Origin: Macrostomum lignano
Lineage: Eukaryota
Reading direction: 5' to 3'
NCBI GenBank assembly: GCA_002269645.1
Contig: NIVC01001818.1
Coordinates: forward strand, 1-64,000
Length of the DNA stretch: 64,000 nucleotides
A model generated the notes under the pieces. It did not search any database. It had not been told where the DNA came from and saw nothing but the letters and a program-made list of their open reading frames with translations. The translations under genes were made by a program, and so were the position numbers. This document shows positions 2,305 to 60,908 of this stretch, piece by piece. Position 1 is the stretch's first letter; every line of letters starts with the position of its first letter.

Positions 2305-11889
<9,585 letters not shown>

Positions 11890-12316: not shown

Positions 12317-14374
12317 TCCAGGTAGCGATCACAATATTCTGATATTTTTATTATGCTCAAAAAGGTGTAAGAATACTTTTTCGCTGGTGTTTTAAAGTGT
12401 AGCACCAATTTGCAGGTTTTGAACTCCGAACTTCATCCTGCAAAATAAGCGTTAATATTCACTCGTCTTAAAATATCATGAGACTTTTGAACTTTTGACT
12501 ATCTATCATTTATACCTAAAAGTTTTTCGGTCGGTTAAACTTAAATCTCGTAGATCATAGAGCTGATGCTAATATCGACTGTCCTTCCTCGCCGATGGTC
12601 TGAAACAAGCCTTTTTAAACTACCTCTTCTTTTTTCAGACTCACCGATCACAGCGAGAGGACTTCTGTCATCGCAGACTCTGGCTTGCACGTTGAAAAAG
12701 CAAAGAACTTACTCTGCGTCTGTGCACTTCTTTTACTCTTCTGTGATGGAAGTCGCAATGAAACAATATTTTCATTACAAGCGATTCGATAAAAAATGTC
12801 TCATATTTTCGTTTAAAATCGTGCATGCTTTTTAACTGAACTGTTGAACTGTTCATTCGATATTGCATTTCAGAAATTTCACTCGACAAAACCTTAGTAA
12901 AATCACTTTATGTGAAGTGACTACGAAAATTTGTTCCTGAAATTTTAAGCGCTTTAACAAGATATATAAGCTTGTCTATTCTGCAAGATTTGAAGTGTAT
13001 CTTCGTCAACCATTGCCTTCAGTGCCGGTAAGATAAAACAGCAATATTGTTTGCATGTTAGCTTGTCCCGCCCATTAATTTTAATATTTAATATTATACT
13101 ATGTTACTGTACCCTTTCTCACTGTCTTTTCTTTGTTTTAACCGCAGCTTGCGTTAAAACTTTTGTTTTAATATTATCTAATCATTGCTTTGTATCTTAT
13201 CGGATAGCTGAGACGGCTAACGAAATCACATTGTTTGGTTCAGTTAGCTAATAAGTATTTTACAAATCAATTAATATAATCTTGAGCGCCCAAACTCTGA
13301 AAGTGAGTCGTCTGAAAATGCTGAATTGTTTACAAATATAATACGAGCGTACGTCGAACTTTTCACGTTTACCGTGTCAGGTGTAGCAGCTTGAAGACAT
13401 AGGTAAATCCCAAATAGACATTCTTATGCGCCAAGCTTTTGACTTTCAATAAATACTTTCTCGCAAATAGTTCGTACTGCTGAAAATTGGATTTGCTAAA
13501 TATTTTAGTCAAGTTTTCTTCGACTGTTAACTTTATCTCTCGGAAGGTTTTGTCGGTGTAAATAATCTTGAACTGGTGTACTTGGATCTATAACAAACTT
13601 TTTAGAATTGCAATACTATGACTCTGTTCGCATGCAAAAGCGCTAAATACTTAAAGTTGGCTGCTTCTTTAACTTGTAACCTCCCGAAATTTCCACGCAT
13701 ATTTTCCTAATCTTGTTTTACTAAGCCGCGGGAATATTTTTTCTGTCTAGACGCAAACGCTGATAATTTCTCCTTTATTATTCATTCAATGAAATGCAGT
13801 TTATGCATAAATATAAGTCTGGTGTGATATTTATTTTTCTGCTTTCTGTCTCATTGCTACATAAAATCATTCGTTTGTCTACTTTTCCAACAATCTGTTC
13901 CATTGCCCCGAGTTCATTTTAGGTCAAGCTTAGCTAGAGAAACTTCTCAGAAAAAACTTAGTGGTTTTCTGCACTGAGAGCTGACCATTTCCGAAAGATT
14001 TAGCATCCTGAATTTAAGCATTGTTTTCTTGCTTTTTTCGCTTCGGCTATGAAAGCACCGAGATACGTACAATACTAACATGCTTAGTGAGTGACCACAG
14101 GAGAGAATAATGCGCATGCATAAAGCGAATGAGTTTGAGAAAGGGACAGGAGAGCTGCTCGTAAATAAGCATATTCCTCCGCTCATTGTAATGCAACTAT
14201 TGCCGTACAAGGCTTGTTAGTATCATTGATTCTACTACAATTTAATGCGTGGCAGCATCGGGCTACATAAGCGAGCAATTTCAAAAACTCTAAAAACAAT
14301 TTTTGCCTGCTTCACATGAATTCGACATGAATGATTCAAAACGTCTCATACTAGCAGCTGGTGAGAGTGTATCC

Positions 14375-17300
14375 ATGCTGCTGCTGCTACTGCTGCTGCT
14401 GCCAACAGTAGCCTGGAGCGCTAAACCGGCTTCCGAGCCTGGCCTACGCGGCGATCCAGCCTGGCTGTCCATACAATGCACCAACCAAAGCAAGACCGGT
14501 CCCGCCGTCTGCGCCTGTACGAAAGCTACTCGCAGCGAGGCCATCTGTCGTCTGGTGGCGGGGCATCAGGTCCCAGCTGATCAGCTGCCCTGCACAGATA
14601 TTAGTCCAACTAAGCTCAGCAGCTTGAAGATTGATTGCAACAATTTTAGCGCCTGCACCAATCTGCACCTACATAGCTTAGTTCGCCGTTCGAGTCTGCT
14701 TCGCCTGGAGATCACCGGCTGCCAGCTTGACGAAGTCGACGAGGCCGAACCGTTGGACAGAAGCAATTTCGTTCTAATCAACGATGGAAGTGAAAAAATT
14801 ACGGGCTCTGCTGGGTTTATTTCCAGCCATGGCAACAAGTCGACTAGCGATGTGAAAAAATTTGGCTGCTCGTTGCACAGTCTGCACATCAGGGACTCCG
14901 ATTTGAGGCTGCCGAATTGGCTGCTGCAGAACTGTCCAAGTATCTGTAGCATTCATATCGTTAAGTCCAGGCTTCGGGTAAGAATTTTTGAACTACGGGC
15001 GTATGAGTTTTATAAAGACAAATTTAACTGAAGGCATTGAGTCTTGTTTTTCACATATAGCTGTACGTGTTATTTGGTAAGTTACAAGGCTAAGTAAGCT
15101 AATTCGTAATTGTCAGAACTATTCATAATCATAGAATATACATTTTCAACTTCTAATTCGTCAAAAATGAGTTCGAATTTGCCAGCCATGCCTAGTGCCT
15201 AGTGCCTAGTACAAACATACCCATAGAGCCTTTGTATTTTTAAAAAAAAAATTAGCGATTACGGTATCAGGGGGGTGTTTCTCGAAACTCACGTAAGTTC
15301 TATGGTAAGTTAGATCGTAAGAAAGAAATTTACATGTAACGTAAGTTTGCTCGTAAGACGCTTTCTCAAAACTCACTTAGACTTTGCGTGGCTTACGCTG
15401 TTCGTAAGTCGTATCTGAAACGAAAATTTGCATGTCTATGGTCATAAATCTGCAAATATCTTTACTTAGTCTATCGTAAGTTGCTTTCGAGAAAGACCCA
15501 CCTTTGATAAAGTTTAACTTGACTTGGCTTTACTAAAGCTTCACGTACTATGCGATTAGTGCTCAAGTGCGTCTTACGACTGATACCGAGCAGTCGTAGG
15601 GTTAAGATCAACCTTACGAAAGACCACAGACATACGTACGTTTCGAGAAACAGTCTTTTGCGCAAAGTTACGAACTCGTAAAGTTGCGATCAATCTTACG
15701 CATAGCTAACTTGCGAGCCCTTCGAGCAACCCGTAAGTGTAGCTTACCCAACTTACGTCTATGGTCGATCTTAAGTTGCTTTCGAGAAAGAACCCCCAGG
15801 TCAGTAGCTTGTGCGCGGATCAAGATTTTTTTAAGGCATAAAATACCATTGCTTATTTCATCGTTAAAAAATTGTACTATTCTGAGCCGGGAATGTGTTG
15901 TCTGTGGTAATTTTTAACAAAAACTAGGATATTATATCATATAATCTCCTCGAAATCAGGAGCAATCAAATTTAATATATGATAAACGCCGTTTAATTCA
16001 TCATAGTCTATGGTTAGAATGTCCGAGGCTGCGTTTAATGGTCTCGAGGCGAGCATAGCGTTTAATGGTCTCGAGGCGAGCGTAGCGAGCTGAGGACCAT
16101 TGTTTAGCAATTTGACGATCATTATTCACATTTTTAATGCAGAACAATCCATTACTACGCTCGTAGAAACAATGCATTGTCTGTAGGATCGTCAAACAGA
16201 AAAACAATGCAAAGAATCAGCGGTCGCAGCACGTGACAACGATTTGTCTATGGCTCGCGCCTCTATGGACCGCTGATTATTTATCCATTGATTGCAGCCT
16301 CGGACATTCTAACCATAGAATGTGAATTAAACGGCGTTTATTATTTACATATATAGCTATTTTCTTGCAAATGTGTATTTCACTTGAACCAGCGAATGAA
16401 AAACCATTTTTTAAACGAAACAGTTAAACATCTAAACGAAATACAAGAAACTATAAACATCAGAAAGTTTCAACGAGTTGTACAGCTAGATGTTGGACAT
16501 CATCAATTTTTGGTGGTGACAATTTACATGTGCATGTGTGCTGCAGCCCTGAACACAGCTGCAGCTCCTCGAATTCACCGCTATTTTGCCAATTTTTTAT
16601 AGCAAAGCGCAAGGAAGCAAGGACTGGTGAACTTTGTGTCTGTTGCGAATACTTAGGCAAAAATATGTCTATGTCCCTTTAAGCTACTGACCTCAGAGTT
16701 GTCTCTAAGGCTGTCGGCTTAATTAAATTTTTCTTGCAATTTGCGGGGTCGGTCTTTTCTTATTGAACGCATTGAGAGTGGCCTATCTAGGGAATATAAG
16801 ATCTATGGTTTGGGTAGAGTAGAAAAAATGACTTCGAATCAAGGACGAGCCTCATACTTTTTTCGCCATGAATTGGTTCGTTTCCGGTCCTGAGTTATCA
16901 AGTTGTCCTTGCTTCGAATTTGACGAAGTGAGGGAATTCGTCAGCTAAGATATGCCGCGTCTATGGCAAAATCCGATACCGCAAGTATCTGAAACATTGT
17001 CACAATGAGTGAAATTCGTCAACACAAATGCTCAAAACTTTACTGCTGGCGCCAATTTTATAAAGCATAGATAACAGATATTTAGCCACGGGTAACGGCT
17101 AAAAGACATGTGCGGGTTTTATAAACACACTGGTAGCTAACCAGGATAATCCATACTCCGGCTATTGAGGACGACGGAGTAAAGTAATAGTCTATGGCAA
17201 AACTAGTCTAACCACGGATTGTAACCGTGGATAAAAAAGACGCAGATTTTAGCAGTGGTTTATAAAATCGATTTTTTTACCATAGATAAAATCCACGGAT

Positions 17301-20300
17301 AATTAATCCACGGGTAGCTGACATGGATTAAAGTGATTATAAAATTGGCCCCTGGGGTGGGACTAATCATGTGTCTACCGCAAAAGGCTGAGCAAAGTGG
17401 CTTCAAATTCGAGTAACTGTTTGACGAATTTGAAGTTTAAAAGGTATAGCTAATACAAGTATTGTGCTTTTTTCAGCTTTTAAACGCATCGGATTTAGTT
17501 CAAGATATGTTTCCCGATATAATGGAACTTTTGTCTATGATAGCAATTAAGGATGCCATCAGCATCATTTACTTTGGTCCAACAAGCATCAATTCGGTCC
17601 ATAGTTTCACCCCTATACTGCAGTGAATATGAAAGCAATGATTTATTCGTAACTGCGGAGGAGGAGCAAGAGTATTCCCAGAATCGTGAACCATATGTTA
17701 GACTGTCGAACAAACGCCAAGGGCTTGTGATCGAAGCGCAGTTTTGACCATGCTAAAATGCTTTTTTATTTGTTGTAGTTTAAGTTGATCAGATTGTATT
17801 TTTGACGTCTTGTTTCATTGGTACAGCGAAATTTGCTCAAAAAAATTAATTGTTTAGCAATTTGACGATCATTATGCGCATTTTTTATGCAGAACAATAC
17901 ATTACTACAAACAATGCATTGGATAAATCGCCAGACAATCGTTGTCACGCACTGGGACCGCTGATTCTTTGCATTGTTTTTCTGTTTGACGATCCTACAG
18001 ACAATGCATTGTTTGTAGCAATGGATTGTTCTGCATTAAAAATGTGAATAATGATCGTCAAATTGCTAAACAATGTTTTTAGGATCGTCAAACAGAAAAA
18101 CAATGCAAAGAATCAGCAGTCGCAGCACGTGACAACGATTTGTCTATGGCTCGCGCCGCGGGCGTTAATGAAAAATCCTCGGGCGCCTAACTGCGCCCTC
18201 TGATTTTCCCATTAACGCTACCGGCGCTCGCCAGACAATCGTTGTCACACACTGAGACCGCTGATTATTTATCCATTGTATAGCTGTAACTCATGATTGG
18301 GTTTCATAATATCTAATGGTCCAAGCTGTTGCTTGTTGGACCAAATTAAATGCTGCTGTGCAAGCCTTGTTACCTCGGACAAAATCTCCATTCTTTTCGC
18401 AAACGTATCTCTGATTAAATTTAATGCGCGTAAGCTCAAATGGACAGCAAAAAGTTATATTTATCAGCAGTTTACTTCGATGTTATTAATTGCCATTTTC
18501 ACACAGTTTTTATATTAATTTTGCTTCCCTGATTAAATTCTCCTCTATAAATTTTATTCTGAAAAATCAGGATCTAACTGAAATGGACGTATTAGCCATA
18601 TCAGCATCTGAGGTTGTAGTACTTTCGGGTTGTGAAATGTTCTACTTTGGTGAAGGTCTCGACGACCGAGCGATCGCCGGTATGAACGAACAACCTCTTA
18701 AATTAGAATGTCTCGGCAAACGGTGCTCCAATTTTACCACCCGAGCCAAGGAAATCATCGATTCAATGATCCAAGCAAGCGGAGCTGTCACAGACATTCG
18801 AGCTCTGTACTACGCGATGGAGATGAGCACTGTCGAGTTCCGCCTAATTCTAGGCAAAACTGTCCGTGACCTGCACAAGGCGAATCCGCTGCACAGTTTG
18901 GACTTGTCGAATAATCACCTTACTGTCATTCCCAGCTGCATATCGATGATGAGCGATTTGAACACGCTAAACTTAAGCAATAATGGGATTAAGGACTTGT
19001 ACGACGTGTCCGGTTGCTGGGGAGGACCTCCCACCGGCATACCCTTGTCCATAAAGGAGAAAACAAAGCGCCAATGCTATTGGTTTTGGTCATCCAGAAA
19101 ATCCTTGCGTGTTCTTGATCTTTCCCACAATTTAATAGAATATCTCGGCCAAGTGGAGCCTTGGTATCAGGTAAGTTATCTACTTTGGTTGACTGAATAT
19201 AGTTGCTTTTTTTGAACAGTTTTAACGGTAAACTTTTAACAAATCAATTCAGGTTAATCTGGAGACTCTGGATCTCTCCTACAACAGATTGGCTATCTTA
19301 GGCACCGACTCATTTACGGGAAGCCTGGCATCAAGTTTGAACAATATCTTCATTCAAAACAACCATTTGAAGACAGTAAATCTTACCTGTTTAAGCAAGG
19401 CTATCCGAATCAATGCTGCGAATAATCAAATTTCTTGTATAAAAAGGGACACTCTGCCGAGCTCGAGAAGCATGAGGTCAATTCATTTGGAAGGCAATCT
19501 AATATCTTCCATAGCTTCATCCGTGTTTACTAATTATCCCATTCTTGAGGAAGTTGATCTCAGCAAAAATATGCTTGAATACATGCCATTCCACAGCTTT
19601 AAAACGACACAACGAGACGCCCCATCCAATCGAGTTGAAGTAAGCATAGCTAAACAGAAGACTACCATTGTGTGCAACTGTCAGCACTTCTTTCTTAGTA
19701 CAATGCTGGAAGAGCAGAGCGACAATCATACGTACGAAATGTCAACTATTGCCACTAAGGAGAGGCAGAAAACCGAATGCCGGCTACTCCCGAGAAGCCT
19801 GGGGGGTCGACGCAACGTTACTAAGACGTTTGCAGCTCTGCATTTGAATGATTTCGGATGCAAGCTTCGCGACTCTAGTAAAATTGAGCTGCCAGTGTCG
19901 GTTTGCAAACGAAAAAATGGAACTTGCATTGGTAAATGCAACCCTAAGTGCTATTGCTGGTCGAATGCCATCAAAATTATAATGAACTGCTCAGTCCATG
20001 GAATACCGAACTCGGCTAGAAATATTCCTATGCCTATAACTGTGCTCGACTTTTCGCACATGACGACCAGCTTTATTCAGGCCTTTTGCAACGACACCAT
20101 CACCTGGAAATTTGATGAAGATCGATTCAGCCTGAAAGAATTCAGAGCCCAGCAAAGCAATATAGTTACTATTGCAGACTATGCATTCGCCAAGACACCT
20201 GAAGTGACCAAAATAATTGTTCCTCACAACAGAATAAAACAGCTAAACGAACGCACATTTGCTGGTCTGGAGCATTCGCTAAACCATCTCGACCTCCGTC

Positions 20301-21409
20301 ATAACAACTTGACAATGGTGTCTGTCAAACGTGTATTCGACCCCCTGTTAGCTTTAGGAACTGTAGAGCTTTTCGGCAACCCCTTCGTATGTGGCTGTTC
20401 TCCCATCCATTTAAACTACCTTAAAGAAATGGCTCAATACGATGGAGTCAAGAGTGTCATTAATGACTATAGACAGCTAACTTGCAACTTAACGGATGAA
20501 TTCGTCACAGATTTCAACTTCTACAACCTCTCTTTCGTCAACACCAATTTCACATTATCTAGCTTCCCAATGCATAGTGTAACTTTGCTCAAAAAAATGT
20601 GCAAAGAAATCGACAAGCAAAAGGCTCAGTTAAAACTTAAAATACTACAGACAGCTTTGAGCACGATAGGCATCGCTGCTGGTCTTATTATAACGGCGCT
20701 TCTTGTGCGTCGGCGGCACTTTGTTCAAAGCATGATTATGCACGTCGTCATAACCCACCTAGTGAAGCCTCGACGCTATCGAGGAGACGAAAGTTTTCAC
20801 GTATTTTTCTATTTCGACGACAGCGACAGCGATATTGCATCGGAAATATTGAAACATCTAAATAAGCCGCCCACGGAGATCCCCGGAAGCAGAGGCATTG
20901 TGGTACGCCATTCAGGCGAGCAAGCGCCATCAGAAGAACTGGCAACTAAAGCTGAGTCCATTCCCTATTTTGTACAGAGAAGCGTTAAGGTCTTGGTTCT
21001 GCTATCAACAGAACTGATGCAAAGCAACACCAATGAAATTCGGCTGATCACGGGAGAACTAGGAAACCTTAGAATGGCAAGGGATCTCATTTTGATCACT
21101 GCTGACAGGCAGGACGAAATGAAGATGCAACTGTCCCATCTGCAAGAAACTTTCCGAACCAACCAGGAGCGCAAGGGCATGGAGTTGTGGATGCGCCTCT
21201 TGACTCGGGGGCACACAATTCGATACGGCAGTAGGGATTGGCAGTACCACCTTATGAATAAGATTCTGCGTGGTCTGCCTTGGCTGCCCAGGTCTTTTGT
21301 ACCGAACCATGGAGGTGTTAATGAATTCGATTCGCTTCTGCTGAAAAATTCTTCTGGTTACGATGAGCTGGAGATGAGTGGCCACAGGCCTCTCTTAAAC
21401 ACATTCTAA
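14375..21409 (+). CDS. Toll-like receptor, multiple-cysteine-cluster type: signal peptide, LRRs, LRRCT/LRRNT, LRRs, LRRCT, TM, divergent TIR-like domain (about 1119 aa)
   Basis: Exons 14375-14977, 18571-19170, 19253-21409, all phase 0 GT-AG. Signal peptide MLLLLLLLLPTVAWS. LRRs: LHSLDLSNNHL, LNTLNLSNNGI, LRVLDLSHNLI, LETLDLSYNRL, LEEVDLSKNML, LNHLDLRHNNL. Internal IVCNC..C and CNPKCYC..C clusters; GNPFVCGC LRRCT; TM TALSTIGIAAGLIITALLV; TIR-like FHVFFYFDDSD...VQRSVKVLVLLS. An upstream in-frame ATG at 14327 is possible. Confidence 0.85.
15271..15796. mobile_element. PIF/Harbinger-like MITE in TLR intron 1
   Basis: 18-bp TIRs GGGGGTGTTTCTCGAAAC / GGGGTTCTTTCTCGAAAG (15/18 match), 3-bp TSD CAG on both sides, many internal CTTACG/CGTAAG subterminal motifs and an internal TIR copy near 15481-15500. 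Confidence 0.75.
15982..16341. mobile_element. Foldback/MITE-like element in TLR intron 1
   Basis: IRs ATAAACGCCGTTTAATTCA (15982-16000 / 16323-16341) and a perfect 25-bp CTATGGTTAGAATGTCCGAGGCTGC (16008-16032 / 16294-16318); 27-bp tandem duplication at 16031-16084. No clear TSD. Confidence 0.6.
17049..17351. mobile_element. PIF/Harbinger-like MITE in TLR intron 1
   Basis: TIRs GCGCCAATTTTATAA / GGGCCAATTTTATAA (14/15 match) with 3-bp TSD CTG (17046-17048, 17352-17354). Confidence 0.75.
17849..18290. repeat. Rearranged inverted copies of the 16100-16290 sequence (nested palindromes)
   Basis: Arms 17849-17920 and 18002-18074 are near-perfect inverted repeats; about 17956-17997 is inverted relative to about 18080-18120; both segments also occur at 16100-16290. 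Confidence 0.7.
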
Positions 21410-28629: not shown

Positions 28630-28799
28630 GTCAGTCAGTCAGTCAGTCAGTCAGTCAGTCACTCAAGTCAGTCAGTCAGTCAGTCAATCAGTCAGTCAGT
28701 CAGTCAGTCAGTCAGTCAGTCAGTCAGTCAGTCAGTCAGTCAGTCAGTCAGTCAGTCAGTCAGTCAGTCAGTCAGTCAGTCAGTCAGTCAGTCAGTCAG
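28630..28799. repeat. (TCAG)n microsatellite
   Basis: About 40 units with two interruptions; abuts and overlaps the nAChR stop codon. Confidence 0.95.
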
Positions 28800-31700
28800 A
28801 CAGTCTTAGGCAGCTGTGGCAGCGGTGGGAGGGTGCAGTCCAGCCTTTCGGCTGGGTCATAATGGTCCAGTGACTCCGGATGTGACCTGGGAATGAGTAG
28901 CAGTACAGCGATTAGGATAGCCAGAGTGTAGAGCGTGAAGAAGGCCCTGTCCAGCACCATAGCCATAGCTCGCCACTCCATCGCTATGAGGTTACGCTTC
29001 TCCTTGTCGCGCAGCCTGCCAAGGTATAATCGCAGGTGCCGCTTGACCTCGTGCACCTCGCGTTCCAACGGGCCGCTGGGTCGCGACAAAATCGGCGAAT
29101 GGTCCGGGGTTGCTTTCAGACCGGACATAGCCTCCTCCACAGTGGCCGGAGGTCGCTGATCGCAGCCGATTGTGAAGTCGGCCTCCGACTCCGCAACACT
29201 GTTGTCGAATTTGTTGTGCCGAAGCGGTGGCACTCGACGAAGACCGGCCACCGAAGCCAGCAACAGCGACTGCGGCGGCTGCGTTGGCGTCTTGTCCAGC
29301 TCTTCGCAACGCACTGGCGGCAGAGGAACCGACTGTCGCACGAGGAACAACCGGCCGAGGCCCTCGACTACTAATCTGCGTAAAATTGGATTTAAGCGTC
29401 CCTGACTTTCGGCTCGAAAGTAGAGATTAAGTACGATAGTTGCCAGGAAGGTGCTTAGCGTTATGAGAATCATGTTGAGGCAGTAGAAATAGCCGATGAG
29501 TGGAAAGGTGCGAACCGCGCTGGGAGTTGTCTCCGCTAACAGCAGGAGAAGAATGAAAAATGCCACGAAGATGTTCATGCCAAGCTGGGTCTTCGCTGGC
29601 GACTCGGGTGGCAGCCAGAAGATCACCCAGGTGAGACATGACAGCAGAATGCAGGGCAGGACCAAGATTGACAGGTAGAAAGCCGGATTTCGGTGCATGC
29701 GGATCTTGTACTCCAGTTTCTTGTAGGTCCGATTGTACAGCCGTCCGCTTGGGTCCTGATAGGTGACGTTAGTGCAGCGGATCTGTGACCGAATTTGTCG
29801 ATTGCGTAGCGACGGTCGAACTCGATACTCGTCTTGGCCGTCCGAGTACCACTCGTTGCTCTTGATGTAGTTGGTAAAGTCTACGTACGGATTGGGCTCA
29901 TAGCTGAACGGCTCGTACTGCAGAGTGTCAGTGTGGTTGGTGAAAGTTATTTTACTCCTTGACCTAGCAGTAGTACGTGAATCTACGCAAATGAGTGAAA
30001 ACCGGTTGTCGCGTGACCAGACAACATTTGCCTAAACATTCCCGTAGTGGCGTAGTAGTTTAGAGAGCACCCATGACCTCTATCGAAACAGTGCTCGAGA
30101 GAGCTGGCAAAATTATTACAACCCGCAAGTACTTGAGAGCGTCTGCATTAAGCAGGATCAATCGACTTTGGCCCCGCTATGCAGTCGGGCAACAATAGAA
30201 GAGACGTTAAGAGAGAAAGAATAGAAATTATGTACGTAAAAAAGTCCCTATTATCACTTCAGTCACGCACATGCAACCAAAACGTGATTAATTGATTAAT
30301 AATTTACTGCAACAAGAGAAATGCGAGAGTCCCCGCGGAAGCTCATGGCTCATTCATACGAGGTTTAGCTGGCACAGGCGTCGAGATTATTAGTGAGCCA
30401 CCCGGAATTGAGATCTGAAAACGTGTTTTTTACTTGACTTCATTTTTTCTAGCTTTCGTTTATGGAATCGGCGAATGCTGGGAAGGGGGCTGCCGCTGTC
30501 CTCTCTTCTTTTCGTCTCTGCAACTCATCTCATATTAAATTGTTGCACGCGGAACCATGGCTATAAAACTCCCACGGGTCCAAGAGAAATTGAATTTCTG
30601 AAGTCCTCGGCTACAACATTTTTGTCCCATTTTCAGGGCAACATTCGTGTTGATTCGAGAAAGCCAGTGTATTTTCGAAATACCGTTTTACTCGTATTAT
30701 AGCTACGCAGTTTTCCAGCAACCCATCGCTGATTTGTACTTTTGCAGAACTTTTGCAGAATCTCGTATCTTTGACTGGTATATGCACCTGCGTGTCTATG
30801 GGTGATACACCCCTGTGTGTCTATGGGTGGTACACCCCTGTGTGTCTATGGGTAGAAATGTAACCCTGCGTGTCTATGGGTGGTAATGTACTCATGTGTG
30901 TCCATGGGTGATGTACACCCCTGTGTGCATTTACCCCCATTGTGCACTTGCCTGTGAAATTTACCCCCTGAGTGTCCATGAGCGATGTCTCCCTGTGTGT
31001 CTATGGGTGATGTATCCCTGTGTCTATGGGTAGTAATGTATCCCTGTGTGCCTATGGGTGATGTAGCCCCCGTGTGTCTATGGGTGATGTACCCCTGTGT
31101 TTCCATGGGTACTAATTTATCCCTGTGTGTCTATGGGTGATGTATCCATGTGTGTCTATGGGTGATGTATCCATGTGTGTCTATGGGTGATGTATCCCTG
31201 TGTGTCTATGGGTGATGTATCCCTGTGTGTTTATGGGTAGTAATGCACGCGCAGAGTTTTTTTCACAAGCAAAGAATTTTCACCATTTATTTTGGTAATC
31301 GCAACTTCAGCGGGGTCATAAAGAAGCCTCACTACTGCACTGCAAGTGTAGAAAGCTTGTTCTCTGTCAAGGCCTAATCTTAAGCTTTTAGAGCTTCTAA
31401 GATGAAAGCAGTGCATAGCCGACCAAGTTGTGTCCATGTCAGCCAAACACGAGTTTTTTTCTCTTGCATGACCTATGAATGACGGTTTCATTAGAACTGC
31501 CTTGTTTGGTTCAGAAAATTACATAATATTCTCGTAGACATCCTGACTTGAATTACTAAATTTTGTGAGCTTCTGCAGAGGTATTGCTGTTAGAATTAAT
31601 AATACTGATTTGACTAATGGTAAATCTTACTTTTCTAGTATAAGCTATCTCTATATTTAATTCAGGATCAATTTGTATCTTCCTTTACTATTTTTCATCA

Positions 31701-34700
31701 TCATTAGAATTGCCTGATTTACTCGCATCATCTCATTTCAATTATTGGAAAACTTAATTCTGCGGTTCCCGATTGGTGTTCCTTCATGAACAGGAAATTG
31801 TTTCAGAACCTGCCATCCGCATTAAGCTGCTTTCAATTTCTGAAGCCCGTCAATTGAAACGGAAATTACTGTGCGTGATTCAAATTAACGTGACAGCGAA
31901 GCGACTTTGTAGCAACGGAGTGTAATGTAATTTTATTCGAAGGCATTAGTTTATTTATTGCGTTGCTTCTATTTTACACATATTTTCAAAGAATGAGCAG
32001 TCATGAGTCATGAGACTCATACGCTAGTGTCTAAGCACCAGTATCTGTGTGATAATATTCATTCACCAGTGTCTATGGGTGCCAATGCACCAGTGTGTAT
32101 TGGTGAAAATGCACCAGTGTGTATTGGTGATAGTGCACCAGTGTCTATGGGTGATAATGCACCAGTGTCTATGGGCGATAATGCACCAGTGTCTATGGGT
32201 GATAATGCACCAGTGTCTATGGGCGATAATGCACCAGTGTCTATGGGTGATAATGCACCAGTGTCTATGGGCGATAATGCACCAGTGTCTATGGGTGATA
32301 ATGCACCAGTGTCTTTGGGACGATAATGCACCAGTGTCTATGGGCGTTAATGCACCAGTGTCTATGGTGCCAAACTTCAATGCACCAGTGTCTATGGGCG
32401 ATACTGCACCAGTGTCTATGGGCGATACTGCACCAGTGTCTATGGGCGATACTGCACCAGTGTCTATGGGCGATACTGCACCAGTGTCTATGGGTGATAA
32501 TGCACCAGAGTCTATGGGTGCCAATGCACCAGTGTCTATGGGCGATACTGCACCAGTGTCTATGGGCGATACTGCACCAGTGTCTATGGGTGATAATGCA
32601 CCAGAGTCTATGGGTGCCAATGCACCAGTGTCTATGGGCGATAATGCACCAGTGTCTATGGGCGTTAATGCACCAGTGTCTATGGTGCCAAACTTCAATG
32701 CACCAGTGTCTGCATGTGCTAATCCAGCAGGAATGGGGAGAGCTCTAAAGCTGCTCCTAGCTAGAAGGAGATGAAGTTAGTTCTCTCTCTGGAGCAGAGC
32801 AATCATGAGAGTTCCCCAGACAGGTCTGTAATTTTCTTGTCAATGTTTCTCCTATGACTGATTTCCCCTGATGCTCCTTTCCTCTCCAAGGGAACTATCG
32901 ACAGTTTAAAATTACACGTTTGTCGTATGTAAAACAGTAAAAGTTTTTTGTAGCTTTTTCTGTGTTTTTCTGTGTTTCAACACTGCGACAACGGAGTCTA
33001 AAGATAATTGGTTCAGTCTGGCATTTTAGCGCAGGCTTGCAAGAAATTAGATGTTTGCAAGCGTTTTTCTCTCTCTCTCTCTCTTTCTGGCTGTAGCGTG
33101 TGGGATTCCGCGCACTTGGCTCATGGCGTGTGTGTGGGTGTGGGTGTGCGTTAGCATGCGAGAATTTCTGTGTGTGTGTGACTGGCCTAACAATTAGATG
33201 CTAAAATTTGGTCCGGGAGCCGGGTCAGGACAGGGGCGGATAGCGCGGATAAAATTAGTCAGTTTTAATCAATCTTTGTCAGCACTGTTAGAACTTTAAT
33301 TATCGTGTGTGCAACTACTGGCCTGACTGTCTGACTGTCTGACTGCCTGGGTGCTATTTCAGAGGAGTCAATTTTTATTTAGCTAACATGATTTTGTGTT
33401 CATTTATTATAGATTTTGATTTCCTGTAATCGTGTCATGATTATGACAGCCTGCAATTAATTTGGTATTCGTGTTACCCATGTAGAATGACGAATGAACA
33501 TATGAGATTATCTCTAGGGTGAACTTCCTGGGGAAAATTGAAGCTGGTTTACAACGTCATCAAATGAAGCCATCAGTTTGATGCATAACACAGCAAAGAC
33601 TTGAAATGTAAAGAAATGGTTCAATAAATAATCTTTCAGAGATGTCGTGAGACATGCAGAGAAGATCAGTGAGATGGAAACAGCGAAGCACAGAAGGAAA
33701 GAGATAGATGAGAGATGGAGACAAAGGAGGGATTGTGAGATAGAGAAGGGGAGAGTGAGATAGAAAAGGGCAGAGTGAGATGGAGAAAGGGAGAGGGAGA
33801 TAGAAGATGAATGAAAGAGTGGGCAGGAGAGCAGGAGAGTGGGCAGGAGAGCAGGAGAGTGAGCAGGAGAGCAGGAGAGTGGGCAGGAGAGCAGGAGAGT
33901 GGGCAGGAGAGCAGGAGAGTGAGCAGGAGAGCAGGAGAGTGGGCAGGAGAGCAGGAGAGTGGGCAGGAGAGCAGGAGAGTGAGCAGGAGAGCAGGAGAGT
34001 GGGCAGGAGAGCAGGAGAGTGGGCAGGAGAGCAGGAGAGTGGGCAGGAGAGCAGGAGAGTGGGCAGGAGAGAGTGAGAAGTATACTCAGAGGTAAAAAGT
34101 TAATGGAGCGATGGTCATTATTCAGAATTCGGAATAATCTCACCTCAAAACCGAACCAGGTGAGATTCAGCTGCGTTATATCATAAGTCCACGAGCCGAA
34201 CTCCAGATAGCAGATCTGTGTGTCAAATGGAAAGTACTGAATCTCCACTGGACAGGTGCTTTTAAACAGACTCTGCGGAATCCACAGCACGGTGCCGTCT
34301 GAGTACACCACTACTCGGGCCATCCGCTTCTCGAGCAGTCTCTCGTCTGCGAAGTTGTGCAATCTAATATCCGGAGTCCACACCTCGTATGGGAACAGTC
34401 TCACCTGGGTGATGTTCTCGAACTCGCCATTAGCTAACCAAGATTCCCAATTGAGCAGAGGATCCTTCCAAGTGTACCTCAGCCAGCAGTTCGTCCGGAG
34501 CATCTGTCGATTCTCGTCTAAATCGAGAATCTGAATGATGGCCAAACCGAACTCAATGGTGATTTGATCTGAGCTGTTGAGCACTGGTCTTCCAAGCAGG
34601 CCGAAGTCCTGATAGCGGTGCACCAGTCGCTGGATCAGAGTCTTCTCCCGGGACTTGTTGGCTGCAGCTCGGAAGCTGCTTATCTTGTCATGGTGGAAAT

Positions 34701-34709
34701 GATTGTCGC

Positions 34710-34753
<44 letters not shown>

Positions 34754-34824
34754 GAATTGATGACTAGAATTCCGAGTAGGAGAAGTGTCTGACAAACAGC
34801 TAAGGACAGGATTCTGCTGATCAT
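28796..34824 (-). CDS. Nicotinic acetylcholine receptor-family Cys-loop subunit, non-alpha, predicted anion-selective (ACC-like), about 600 aa
   Basis: Exons 34824-34144 (donor GAG|GTGAGA) and 29917-28796 (acceptor ctgcag), phase 0. Signal peptide plus polyQ14, VWTPDI, Cys-loop CPVEIQYFPFDTQIC, FGSWTYD, four TM segments, M1-M2 linker LPPESPAK, no vicinal Cys pair in loop C. Confidence 0.93.
30788..31243. repeat. Minisatellite, about 23-25-bp unit GTGTGTCTATGGGTGATGTATCCCT
   Basis: Degenerate tandem array in the nAChR intron. Confidence 0.85.
32055..32711. repeat. Minisatellite, 24-bp unit AATGCACCAGTGTCTATGGGCGAT
   Basis: About 27 tandem units in the nAChR intron. Confidence 0.95.
33813..34073. 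repeat. Minisatellite, 20-bp unit GAGTGGGCAGGAGAGCAGGA with 60-bp higher-order period
   Basis: Lines 33841, 33901 and 33961 are identical; every third unit has GAGTGAG. Preceded by GA-rich low-complexity DNA. Confidence 0.95.
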
Positions 34825-39914: not shown

Positions 39915-48436
<8,522 letters not shown>

Positions 48437-57200: not shown

Positions 57201-58282
57201 CTTTGGCTAAAAGAGCATTTGATTAATAGTTGCTATTGGCTAATAGAAGAATTAATTGCTATTCTCTTTAATAGTGACTTACATGTGTGTGTTGCCAATA
57301 GAAATGGTTAGGTGAATCCCTAGGTTGTGCCTAAGCATGGATACAGAGAGGACTCTTATCCACCCAATATGAGAGACAGAAGCTAAGACATGCAATGCAA
57401 CAAGTTAAACAAAATGTAATTAAAAAGCAATATTTCATTCTAAAAGTATTACTTTGGAATCCACAATTCCTAGAAAGATAAACAACATGAAAAATATAAA
57501 TTTTAATGCAAAAATATGACAAATAGACTGAGCACAAGGTTGAGGTTTGAAATTCACTAACTACCAAATTTTAATTTTATTTAACTATTCAACAAAGCTT
57601 GACTAAAAAGATTGGCCTAACCCCTCAGTTTGATCAAGTACTCAACTTAAAGTTAGATTTAAAAGTAACTATTTAGTATAATAGATATTAACTGTGCTTT
57701 TTATAATAACTTTATTGCGTGAACTTGTTTTTTTCTGTTTTTTAAAAATACAAAAGGCCCTATTTTTGAATTTTAAAATTTAATAAGCATTATTTATTTA
57801 AAAATCAAATATTTCATTAGTGTGCCATGTGTATTTATATGCTTTTTTGCAAAAAATATTTTTAAATGTATATTAGCATTTTGAAAGTATATTGGCAGGT
57901 CAGATGACCTTATGAAAGTTTGTATTATTTCATAAGATCAATCTATTTTGCCCCCAATAATATGAATTAATATTAGAGCTAAGATTATTTGTTTATAATT
58001 ATTTATCAAAACTTGAAAATAATTTAAATTGTGATGCTTATTTTTGTTGTTTATCAGATTAAAAGTCTGATTTTGTTGATTAGGTGTCTATATATAAGTC
58101 TAAAAGTAAAAAAATTCAAAAGTTATTTTTCCAAAGTCTGTATCAAGTTCAAGAAATAACATAAATAAGCTGCAATTGGGGTCGATTCTTCATTTATTGT
58201 CCACAAATAAAACAATGACTGTTGACTTTCTATTGCATAACAAAAGGCTACTTTGTTTCCATTCATGCTAGTTATACAAGCC

Positions 58283-60908
58283 ATGTCAGCCATTGCTGGC
58301 GTACCAACATTCTCAGCGTCTGCGGCGGCCATTTCAAACTCTTCGTCTACCAGCCAATCAGTGACTGGTTCGAGGCCTCCCGTGCCACTGCTGTCCGCTG
58401 TGCCCAGTGCGGCCGGGAGCGCCAGTGCAACTAACTCTCCTCTGCGCTCGCAGCAGCAACAGCAGCAACCAACCCAGCAACAGCAGCAGCAGCCTCCCGA
58501 ACTTGTCTGTCTGACCCTGAAGAATGTCCTGCTACCGCCTGAACGATTGGACCCAGCTAATAGTCCATCTAGGCTAGATGGCCTGTCCTATTCAGACGAA
58601 TGGAATTTGCGATACATGGGCTGCGAGCTGATCCAATCTGCTAGTATATTGTTGAAACTGCCGCACGTGGCCTGCGCCACTGGCCAGGTGCTCTATCAAC
58701 GATTCTATTATTCTCGTTCGTTAGTCAGGCATCACTATGAGCACACTGCTATGGCTAGTATATTTCTAGCCGCTAAAATTGAAGAAGCGCCCAGACGAGC
58801 TCGCGACGTTATTAATGTGTTTCATCATATCCGACAGTTTAGGGAGAAACGGTAGGTTGAACTTCTTGAGTTATATCATCAGGTCGATTTCAACCAGAAC
58901 CTTTTAAAATCTTCTAAAGACAGACACCTTGAATTCCTTGATAATGGACACTGGAATTCCCTACAAGGAAGGTCATAAAAGCAGTCGCTATAGACTTCCC
59001 TATTAGCCGACCCTATAGAATTCCCTATTAGCAGACCCGATAGAATTCCCTATTAGCAGACCCGATAGAATTCCCTGTTAGCAGACCCGATAGAATTCCC
59101 TGTTAGCAGACCCGATAGAATTCCCTGTTAGCAGACCCTAAAGAATTCCCTATTAGCAGACCCTATAGAATTCCCTGTTAGCAGACCCTATAGAATTCCC
59201 TATTAGCAGACCCTCAACAATTCCCTATTAGCAGACCCTATAGAATTCCCTATTAGCAGACCCGATAGAATTCCCTATTAGAAGACCCCAAAGAATTCCC
59301 TATTAGCAGACCCTCAACAATTACAATTCCCTATTAGCAGACCCGATAGAATTCCTAAAATTCTCACATGATTCTCCTATCGCATTTCAGGCCGTTCACT
59401 CCGCTACCGTTAGACAACAACTATGTAAATCTAAAAAATCAAGTCATCAAGGCGGAGCGCCGTTTATTAAAAGAATTGGGCTTCTCTGTACATGTACAGC
59501 ATCCTCACAAGGTAAGCACGTTTCTTCTTTGATTCGCGGTTAGAACACATGTTAACTAATTTATACCCAGGCAAATCATAATATTAAACGACATTGCGTC
59601 AAATCTGTTAGTCTCTAGGGCTGAAATAGAATTATTCTCAGAAAACCAGCTTGATACAATACAATTCCTCCTACTGTCTGTAATCATTGCCTTGTTTACC
59701 GCATGTCTTTTCTGGCAAAAGGGTTTTTGGTATCTCCCCCAATCAGTTCTAAATCCCACCTGATCCTGTTTATCAAATTGTACTATATGGACTGAGCCAG
59801 TTACCTAAAACTCCACTAAGCCAGTTTACCTAAAACTCCACTAAGCCAGTTACCTAAAACTCCACTAAGCCAGTTTACCTAAAACTCCACTAAGCCAGTC
59901 ACCTCAAACTCCACTAAGCCAGTTACGTCAAACTCCACTAAGCCAGTTAACCTAAAACTCCACTTAGCCAGTTACCTAAAACTCCACTTAGCCAGTTACC
60001 TAAAACTCCACTTAGCCAGTTACCTAAAACTCCACTAAGCCAGTCACCTAAAACTCCACTTAGCCAGTTACCTAAAACTCCACTTAGCCAGTTACCTCAA
60101 ACTCCACTAAGCCAGTCACCTAAAACTCCACTTAGCCAGTTACCTAAAACTCCACTAAGCCAGTTAACCTAAAACTCCACTTAGCCAGTTACCTAAAACT
60201 CCACTAAGCCAGTTACCTAAAACTCCACTTAGCCAGTTACCTAAAACTCCACTTAGCCAGTTACCTAAAACTCCACTAAGCCAGTTACCTGAAACTCCAC
60301 TAAGCCAGTTACCTAAAACTCCACTAAGCCAGTTACCTAAAACTCCACTAAGCCAGTTACCTAAAACTCCACTTAGCCAGTTACCTAAAACTCCACTAAG
60401 CCAGTTACCTAAAACTCCACTTAGCCAGCTACCTAAAACTCCACTAAGCCAGTTACCTAAAACTCCACTAAGCCAGTTAACCTAAAACTCCACTTAGCCA
60501 GTTACCTGAAACTCCACTAAGCCAGTTAACCTACGAGCTTCACTAAGAATTTGATTTAATTATCAAGTTGCGCAAATCAATTTTCAAGTCTTCAAAGAGC
60601 GCCTCGGTCGCGGATAAATCAACCAAGTTATTATATAAAATGGTAAAATGCTATATAAAATCGGAACAAAAGTGAAGTTCCGTTAAAATATTTTAATAGC
60701 CTTAATCCTACACTACACAGCTTTTGATATTAAGTGACTGATTACAATTTCCATGATAAATGATCGGTGTCTGTATCGCAAAACGCTAACCTGCTTGCCC
60801 TCTGTTGCCTTTTTATGGCGACTCGTTTCGTCAAAAATTTCAGCTGATCCCAGTTTGGCTGAACTGGCTACAGCTGGATGACAACCAGCAATTGAGACAA
60901 TCTGCCTG
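58283..60908 (+). CDS. CCNL1: Cyclin L, 5' part (gene continues beyond the window)
   Basis: Exons 58283-58851, 59391-59511, 60844-60908, phases consistent. Motifs [88 protein letters not shown]. Confidence 0.95.
58993..59355. repeat. Minisatellite, 25-bp unit GAATTCCCTATTAGCAGACCCGATA
   Basis: Cyclin L intron 1. Confidence 0.95.
59787..60530. repeat. Minisatellite, 24/25-bp unit AGCCAGTTACCTAAAACTCCACTA
   Basis: Cyclin L intron 2. Confidence 0.97.

Follow-up and report, generated by a model that had tools for sequence, protein, structure and literature searches.

Among the described systems, Drosophila Toll-1 and the P-type or multi-cysteine-cluster (mcc) TLRs, known as mccTLRs from spiralians and cnidarians, come closest to the gene presented here. 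They are type I membrane proteins in which the LRR ectodomain is broken by an LRRCT–LRRNT junction and followed by a short second LRR block, a membrane-proximal LRRCT, one transmembrane (TM) helix, a cytoplasmic domain of the TIR type and a C-terminal extension, and this is the arrangement that the flatworm protein appears to share. Several insect Tolls act in adhesion or guidance. Macrostomum lignano belongs to one of the earliest-branching flatworm lineages and is a regenerating model organism for which transgenesis and RNAi are available.

In published surveys a TLR is defined by the combination of LRRs, a TM segment and a TIR domain (PMC8609888, PMC10279657). The survey of 2021 found no TLRs in Platyhelminthes and counted M. 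lignano itself at zero, a value that was used to date the loss of TLRs early in the phylum (PMC8609888); the survey of 2023 likewise reported them absent (PMC10279657) and two reviews concur, so the statement of the sequence-only reading that surveys report no TLRs from Platyhelminthes agrees with the literature. From planarians homologues of MyD88, SARM, TRAF, IRAK and NF-κB have been reported, and in Schmidtea mediterranea the name “non-canonical TLRs” is used for TIR-only and LRR-only proteins (PMC7958881, PMC6043800). These are also flatworm proteins, each bearing one half of a TLR, but 0 of 20 Smed-TIR proteins have attached LRRs whereas in M. lignano the LRRs, the TM helix and the TIR-like domain are encoded by one exon. 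TOL-1 of Caenorhabditis elegans functions in development and neuronal pathogen avoidance and not in classical MyD88/NF-κB immunity (PMC6043800). It resembles the flatworm receptor, in a comparison made by description only, as a lone divergent P-type TLR of a lineage thought to be poor in Toll-pathway components; in contrast with the flatworm protein, however, TOL-1 is picked up by standard domain searches and counts as a canonical TLR.

The window analysed here is a stretch of 64,000 nucleotides from the M. lignano contig NIVC01001818.1 (positions 1 to 64,000, forward strand). The protein encoded at this locus is 100% identical to GenBank entry PAA63714.1 of M. lignano, which is named “hypothetical protein” and whose model is flagged as partial. 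This identity together with the lineage of the species (Platyhelminthes, Macrostomorpha), a free-living flatworm, confirms the suspected flatworm host. A second copy with 97% identity, PAA94200.1, carries the automatic UniProt name “TIR domain-containing protein” and its tail is 100% identical to the tail encoded in the window. This name, which presumably derives from the PROSITE profile PS50104, implies that some other TIR signature passes its threshold. No paper turned up in a literature search for the locus tag Mlig030947. The expectation that the gene had not yet been annotated as a TLR thus holds in so far as no source calls it one, but both copies are present in GenBank and the 97% copy is named as TIR-containing in UniProt. 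Contamination or mis-assembly was considered and rejected: there are two M. lignano loci with 97–98% DNA identity that have a common gene structure and common flanks.

The gene lies on the plus strand and consists of three exons (14327–14977, 18571–19170 and 19253–21409) that are separated by two GT-AG introns and code for a product of 1135 amino acids. Exon 1 (aa 1–217), delimited by a 100% identical tblastn match of PAA63714.1 together with the splice model and its translation, contains the start codon, the signal peptide, the N-terminal Cys cluster and, from 14615 on, the first LRRs, which are irregular; it ends at the donor GTAAGA. Its ATG at 14327 is the first in-frame Met downstream of an in-frame TAA at 14291. 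The start at 14375 that was proposed earlier corresponds to an internal Met (M17) located just ahead of the stretch of Leu residues in the signal peptide, and 14327 is preferable; otherwise the gene is as it had been described. Within intron 1 (14978–18570, plus strand) there are MITE-like repeats, inverted as well as direct, at about 16000–16330 and 17850–18270; its counterpart in the paralogous locus is shorter by about 1.9 kb. Exon 2 (aa 218–417; acceptor CAG, donor GTAAGT) continues LRR block 1 and gives matches to Pfam LRR_4, LRR_8 and LRR_1. Exon 3 (aa 418–1135 plus the stop codon; acceptor CAG, stop TAA) is a single continuous open reading frame of 719 codons that takes in, without interruption, the final LRRs of block 1, both internal Cys clusters, LRR block 2, the LRRCT, TM helix and tail, and the stop. 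Since all these elements lie within this uninterrupted exon, the linkage of LRRs, TM helix and tail does not depend on splice prediction.

The order of domains, all of them encoded on the plus strand, is signal peptide, N-terminal Cys cluster, LRRs, internal LRRCT plus LRRNT, LRRs, LRRCT, one TM helix and a tail of 233 residues. The signal peptide (14327–14416, aa 1–30) is seen as a hydrophobic peak in a signal-peptide-like N-terminus, and the Cys map places the N-terminal cluster (C51, C62, C64 and C74) at 14477–14548. LRR block 1 (about aa 97–545) is outlined by Pfam LRR matches; with the full protein LRR_8 gives E=8e-25, and LRR_4 and LRR_5 match as well. An internal LRRCT-like cap follows at 19637–19861 (C558-x-C560, C593, C620), where phmmer alignments with LRFN, LRRC4B and LRIG1 continue through the CxC motif. 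It is succeeded at 19904–20017 by an LRRNT-like cap (C635, C642, C646, C650-x-C652, C663 and then NIPxxITVLDFSH), where phmmer alignments with Slit, LRRTM and LGI1 set in at the N-cap's first residues in each of these proteins. The two Cys clusters span 19673–19990, close to the interval of about 19660–19990 that had been assigned to an internal LRRCT+LRRNT cluster. LRR block 2 (20018–20371, aa 673–790) has about five repeats, contains the best stretch for Pfam LRR_8 and is covered by PDB alignments. The membrane-proximal LRRCT (20372–20602; GNPFVC797GC799...C828...C867) fits the NPW/F-x-C-x-C caps known from solved structures of LRR proteins and aligns with GNPWDCGC, NPWDCSC and NPFICDC of ALS, LGR4-VLR and Slit2.

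Our LRRNT and LRRCT calls, which concern four Cys clusters in all, are based on Cys patterns and on phmmer and PDB alignments, as the Pfam LRRNT and LRRCT models gave no match on the isolated Cys-cluster segments. There are at least two LRRCT modules (CxC clusters at aa 558–620 and 797–867) and an LRRNT-type cluster (aa 635–663) after the internal one, which is the pattern that defines P-type or mcc TLRs. Besides the signal peptide only one segment reaches a Kyte-Doolittle peak of this kind (19-residue mean 2.15), namely the single TM helix TALSTIGIAAGLIITALLV at 20651–20707 (aa 884–902); it is followed by RRR, so that positive charges are found at its inner side. The ectodomain has 16 NxS/T sequons. 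The domain map therefore agrees with the mcc or Toll-1-like architecture proposed before, and each element of the complete Toll-type receptor in one spliced reading frame was found in the splice model, the translation and the Cys map, with small corrections of coordinates.

A divergent TIR-like domain was delimited in the tail at 20789–21277 (plus strand, aa 930–1092) from Pfam PF01582, a TIR profile of our own, hhalign, the predicted order of strands and helices and the UniProt name of the paralogue. Among 24,736 Pfam models the TIR family PF01582 is the only one that matches the tail, and other families with alternating strands and helices stay silent. The match has E=0.017–0.035 and 14.3–15.3 bits (profile positions 15–138 of 179 for the 15.3-bit match), which is below the curated gathering score of 21.3 bits; the library-wide E=0.017 corresponds to a P of about 7e-7 for a single pre-specified model. 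In a Pfam scan of the full-length protein no TIR match appeared. Hence the earlier suggestion that this TIR is too divergent for standard HMM thresholds is borne out. Our own TIR profile, built from 11 sequences and checked against PDB TIR chains, scores the tail with 10.5 bits (P=2.3e-5), a value that none of 20,000 shuffled sequences reached (maximum 8.3), and the reversed tail with -0.1 bits. The match is collinear and covers strand A, helix A and the part from helix B to strand D. As a control, 189 ORF segments running from stop to stop were taken from the window and from the paralogous locus, and the two exon-3 ORFs ranked first and second among them. An alignment with hhalign, collinear from strand A over strand C to the start of helix C, gave P=0.0037–0.0062 at a probability of only 6–9%.

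Of the canonical TIR boxes 1–3, (F/Y)DAFISY, RDxxPG and FW, the first is partly kept in the tail as FHVFFYF. Box 2 is not conserved; HSGEQAPS is found instead, with only a Pro at or beside the position of the BB-loop Pro. Outside the aligned region a Trp resembling box 3 (DW or LW) was read by eye only. Single-sequence AlphaFold2 yielded low-confidence models with a pLDDT of 38.9 for the 233-residue tail and 43.3 for a trimmed domain of 171 residues, and DSSP assigned to both runs the same order strand-helix-strand-helix-strand-helix-strand-helix-helix-strand-helix. Of the TIR fold, a parallel sheet of five strands with five helices, it is only this order that the low-confidence models match. 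A Foldseek search of the PDB with both low-confidence models gave nothing at E ≤ 0.001; the top matches (PII-like proteins, ribosomal proteins and Lrp) are meaningless and comprise no TIR. With phmmer against PDB sequences no TIR was obtained from the tail either, only a chance match to OS-9 (E=1.1), and scans with PADLOC and NCBIfam gave no match. A word-index search of the tail returned nothing at E ≤ 10, and an exhaustive phmmer search of 1.84 billion representative proteins detected no homologue except its own paralogue. The TIR call thus draws on neither an alignment of relatives nor covariation nor an orthologue. A NADase-type TIR was also considered; it is unsupported, and the tail has no aligned counterpart of the conserved Glu in helix C. 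The putative TIR assignment of the tail is thus a weak one that is backed statistically and not structurally. What had been termed a TIR-like tail has a real statistical similarity to TIR profiles, but this similarity is weak and falls below the curated threshold. With respect to Toll-1 and the mcc TLRs the difference is considerable: canonical TIRs match each other with E-values from 1e-7 to 1e-50 and the flatworm tail matches none of them, box 2 is lacking, the Pfam cap models are silent and orthologues are not detectable.

Two other explanations have to be weighed against a divergent TLR. According to the less probable of them, which we regard as very improbable, the locus is a non-functional or unexpressed duplicate, i.e., one of a young pair of pseudogenes or an artefact of gene prediction. 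It could account for the loss of 1 bp close to where exon 1 of the paralogue ends and for the partial flag that GenBank attached to the model of the window copy. In the window copy itself, however, 1135 codons can be read without a break across three exons joined at canonical splice sites; its signal peptide is a proper one, and its ATG is preceded by an in-frame stop. Between the two copies we counted 19 synonymous and 26 non-synonymous changes (pN/pS 0.39), whereas under neutrality about 35 of the 45 changes would be expected to be non-synonymous; this deficit amounts to about 3 SD (the SD being our own arithmetic). The coding sequence is at least as conserved as the non-coding flanks. The two copies are under purifying selection.

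The other alternative, which appears unlikely to us but carries far more weight, sees in the protein an LRR-TM adhesion or guidance molecule of the Slit, SLITRK, LRRTM or Tartan type with a tail that is either non-homologous to TIR or a decayed, non-signalling relic, so that a generic alternation of strands and helices would lie behind the weak TIR score. The ectodomain is compatible with it, as the best matches are generic: LGR4/5, ALS, LRIG1, Slit2, LGI1 and LRRC4 rank equal to or above TLRs. The neuronal LRR proteins Slit, SLITRK and LRRTM, which are among these best matches, also have tandem modules capped by LRRNT and LRRCT (two of them in SLITRK and Slit), and SLITRK and LRRTM share the single TM helix. 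Since internal LRRCT–LRRNT junctions occur in Slit and SLITRK too, a Toll cannot be diagnosed from the ectodomain alone. The sub-threshold score, the missing box 2 and the failure of the structural comparison point in the same direction. On the other hand, Slit, SLITRK and LRRTM are without a TIR-like cytoplasmic domain and their similarity is one of general LRR type. A generic pattern is also difficult to reconcile with the silence of all other strand-helix families in Pfam, with a collinear profile match that exceeds every shuffled and the reversed sequence, and with the TIR name given to the paralogue by the UniProt pipeline. Furthermore, the tail proteins of the two copies are identical (one synonymous and no non-synonymous change) while the aligned parts of the ectodomains differ by 24 residues.

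Taken together, we consider it probable that this M. lignano gene encodes an overlooked, highly divergent TLR-like receptor of the mcc type. We assign a probability of about two in three (0.68) to the reading that the gene is intact and specifies a type I receptor whose domains are ordered as in mcc (P-type, Toll-1-like) TLRs, with a very divergent TIR homologue on the cytoplasmic side. Only tentatively do we propose the more far-reaching view that M. lignano has kept a working descendant of an ancestral mcc-type Toll receptor whose TIR drifted past the thresholds of the surveys. The announcement of a new or unrecognised Toll system in the sequence-only reading was overstated; the protein is at most a divergent member of the TLR family. 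In the putative mechanism the glycosylated ectodomain would bind either a ligand outside the cell or a partner carried by another cell, this binding would bring two receptors together, and the paired TIR-like domains would form a homotypic platform for recruitment of a TIR adaptor, with a presumed role in immunity or development. By analogy with several insect Tolls and C. elegans TOL-1 the divergent receptor may alternatively serve in adhesion or guidance.

A receptor of M. lignano that combines LRRs, a TM helix and a TIR-like domain in a single exon would change the survey count of zero for the very same species, and it would shift or soften the loss of TLRs that has been deduced for flatworms. 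Should descent from an ancestral mcc Toll be true, the loss would have occurred inside Platyhelminthes and not at their base, and a regenerating flatworm would offer an axis of Toll-type signalling or adhesion for study. Such a receptor would also provide a tractable model of regeneration with a surface protein that is a candidate for a part in immunity or tissue patterning, and it illustrates that TIR searches based on thresholds can overlook fast-evolving receptors. Our claim is a modest one, as the sequence is already public, its TIR was flagged automatically by UniProt and the function is a prediction. The last 43 residues (21278–21406, plus strand), as read from the translation, contain an ExxxLL motif (EFDSLL) and a YxxPhi motif (YDEL), which may represent endocytic sorting signals.

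The window DNA is that of Macrostomum lignano (Platyhelminthes, Macrostomorpha), since PAA63714.1 ("hypothetical protein BOX15_Mlig030947g2, partial"; 1144 aa) is recovered from it by tblastn with 100% identity across three blocks; the flatworm host presumed in the sequence-only reading is thereby established. This protein shares a 90% cluster with PAA94200.1 of the same species, which matched the 706-aa ORF 19289-21409 with 97% identity in a protein search and is named "TIR domain-containing protein" in UniRef. The receptor gene comprises three exons on the forward strand, namely exon 1 at 14327-14977 (donor GTAAGA), exon 2 at 18571-19170 (acceptor CAG, donor GTAAGT) and exon 3 at 19253-21409 (acceptor CAG, stop TAA), which together encode 1135 aa. 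No other in-frame Met lies between an in-frame TAA at 14291 and the ATG at 14327, which leads directly into a signal-peptide-like sequence; position 14375, formerly taken as the start, codes for an internal Met (M17). The motifs AATAAA and ATTAAA occur 260-310 nt 3' of the stop codon.

Hydropathy reveals only two strong peaks in the receptor, the signal peptide and aa 884-902 (TALSTIGIAAGLIITALLV), the latter being followed by RRR. Pfam detects leucine-rich repeats (LRR_8 with E=8e-25, plus LRR_4, LRR_5 and LRR_1), and the cysteines group into four clusters: LRRNT-like C51/62/64/74, LRRCT-like C558-x-C560...C593...C620, LRRNT-like C635/642/646/650-x-652/663 (followed by NIPxxITVLDFSH) and the LRRCT NPFVC797GC799...C828...C867. 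The Pfam LRRNT and LRRCT models gave no match to these clusters, so the cap assignments depend on cysteine patterns and pairwise alignments. The last cap (C797-C867) pairs residue by residue with GNPWDCGC, NPWDCSC and NPFICDC in the solved structures of ALS, LGR4-VLR and Slit2. Alignments to Slit, LRRTM and LGI1 obtained with phmmer start at the cluster C635-663, from residues 2-36 of those chains, and the internal CxC motif (C558-x-C560) is spanned by alignments to LRFN, LRRC4B and LRIG1. The internal LRRCT+LRRNT junction lies at 19673-19990, where the sequence-only reading had located it, and the whole architecture described there is present in the spliced three-exon gene. As everything from aa 418 to the stop is encoded within exon 3, the linkage of LRRs, transmembrane helix and tail is taken straight from DNA.

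The 233-aa cytoplasmic tail alone has TIR (PF01582) as its sole match among 24,736 Pfam families, with E=0.035 and 14.3 bits (residues 41-169 on profile positions 15-137 of 179), rising to E=0.017 and 15.3 bits for the trimmed domain; both scores fall under the gathering score of 21.3 bits, and a Pfam scan of the full receptor returned no TIR match. Because the hypothesis had specified one model beforehand, the probability that applies comes to about 0.017/24,736 = 7e-7 by our own arithmetic. An independent check was made with a home-made alignment of 11 TIR domains; its TLR2 sequence matches PDB 1FYW at 341 bits, and its profile retrieves TLR1, 2, 3, 5, MyD88, TIRAP and SARM1 chains at 110-200 bits. 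With an HMM made from this alignment the tail obtains 10.5 bits (P=2.3e-5), a value reached by 0 of 20,000 composition-preserving shuffles (maximum 8.3), the reversed tail giving -0.1. The window and the paralogous locus together yield 189 stop-to-stop segments of 80 aa or more, among which the two exon-3 ORFs score highest (6.5 and 6.4 bits; third 1.7). With hhalign the values are P=0.0062 for the tail and, once it is trimmed to the domain, P=0.0037; the alignment runs through 72 collinear columns, and its HH probability is only 6-9%. HMM, hhalign and pairwise alignments give the same register, comprising strand A and helix A with box 1 (ESFHVFFYFDDSDSDIASEILKHL), strand B and BB loop (GIVVRHSGEQAPS), strand C (RSVKVLVLLSTELMQS) and strand D (DLILIT). 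Of the TIR boxes, box 1 survives in part, box 2 (RDxxPG) is not conserved apart from a Pro at or adjoining the BB-loop Pro position, and a DW or LW resembling box 3 was recognised by eye only; the helix-C Glu of NADase TIRs has no aligned counterpart. Within the final 43 residues (21278-21406) EFDSLL (ExxxLL) and YDEL (YxxPhi) are candidate sorting motifs, a hint at endocytic trafficking.

When the tail was run exhaustively with phmmer through 1.84 billion representative proteins, the paralogue (tail 100% identical) was the only match; a word-index search gave no match and a search of PDB sequences no TIR. Canonical TIRs, by contrast, detect each other at E 1e-7 to 1e-50, which makes the tail either an extreme outlier or specific to its lineage. 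Confidence was low in two single-sequence AlphaFold2 runs (pLDDT 38.9 and 43.3; pTM 0.26 and 0.36), and Foldseek with these models retrieved nothing at E<=0.001 and no TIR. All that can be used from these runs is the sequence of predicted elements, the same in both, strand-helix-strand-helix-strand-short helix-strand-helix-helix-strand-helix, which would be compatible with TIR topology from strand A to helix E if the paired helices represent helix D. A less likely reading is an LRR adhesion receptor whose tail is a relic or no TIR at all; against it stand the shuffle controls and the collinear match. The best reading, with a probability of roughly two in three, is a divergent TLR-like receptor of the multiple-cysteine-cluster type. 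It falls within the three-domain TLR definition only on accepting the sub-threshold TIR. Having neither a Pfam score at the curated threshold nor a conserved box 2, it is classed here as TLR-like, a probable divergent member short of a proven TLR. The lone divergent P-type TLR of Caenorhabditis elegans, TOL-1, may be its closest functional analogue.

As a probable member of the TLR kind the receptor contradicts a specific published count, namely 0 TLRs in M. lignano, used as argument for early loss in the phylum and obtained by hmmsearch, first with a TIR and afterwards with an LRR profile, and SMART validation (Orus-Alcalde et al. 2021, PMC8609888). A 2023 survey (PMC10279657) likewise has no TLRs for Platyhelminthes. 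A full-length score of about 15 bits would yield a non-significant E in a proteome-wide hmmsearch, which would explain why that survey missed it. According to reviews planarians have TIR-only and LRR-only proteins only, with LRRs on 0 of 20 Smed-TIR proteins, and homologues of MyD88, SARM, TRAF, IRAK and NF-kB are reported from them (PMC7958881, PMC6043800). Our literature search found the receptor's locus tag in no paper and a Macrostomum TLR reported in none. The idea of a flatworm TLR overlooked through TIR divergence is partly supported: the sequence is already public and its TIR flagged automatically by UniProt, and both the TIR fold and a receptor function are putative.

The paralogous locus on NIVC01000013.1 (L001) has the three exons and flanks in common with the window at 97-98.5% DNA identity. 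There, codon 215 is short of one A, 8 nt 5' of the donor of exon 1 (L001:8264-8272, corresponding to 14966-14974), which breaks the frame and is the reason why the PAA94200.1 model begins in exon 2. The missing base may reflect either a genuine frameshift confined to one duplicate or an indel from long-read assembly. The copies differ by 19 synonymous and 26 non-synonymous changes (pS 0.025, pN 0.0098, ratio 0.39), and against a neutral expectation of about 35 of 45 non-synonymous this is a deficit of about 3 SD by our own arithmetic. The tail contributes one synonymous and no non-synonymous change, too few to be tested alone. A dead gene, a reading that could point to the broken frame of one copy and has this deficit against it, is very unlikely. 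Intron 1 is about 1.9 kb longer in the window than in the paralogue owing, for much of that length, to MITE-like copies (16000-16330 and 17850-18270), with direct and inverted repeats of 60-87 nt at 93-98% identity.

Downstream, minisatellite arrays are densely strung along 27800-63755, each with a period of 9-32 bp and the largest with 126 copies. The ORF 41973-43244 (423 aa) is a plain 9-bp repeat (ACCGATGTC x126), and its Pfam Forkhead_N and His-rich matches were rejected as low-complexity artefacts. Two large minus-strand ORFs at 28796-34824 match Neur_chan_memb (E=2.5e-30) and Neur_chan_LBD (E=1.4e-44), indicating a putative Cys-loop ligand-gated ion channel gene; the upstream one includes a 20-bp tandem array (33816-34071) that is probably intronic read-through. 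Two exon-sized forward-strand ORFs, with a C2 domain at 6905-7453 (E=3.6e-19) and a cyclin N-terminal domain at 58253-58855 (E=8.7e-6), look like ordinary neighbour genes without relation to the receptor.
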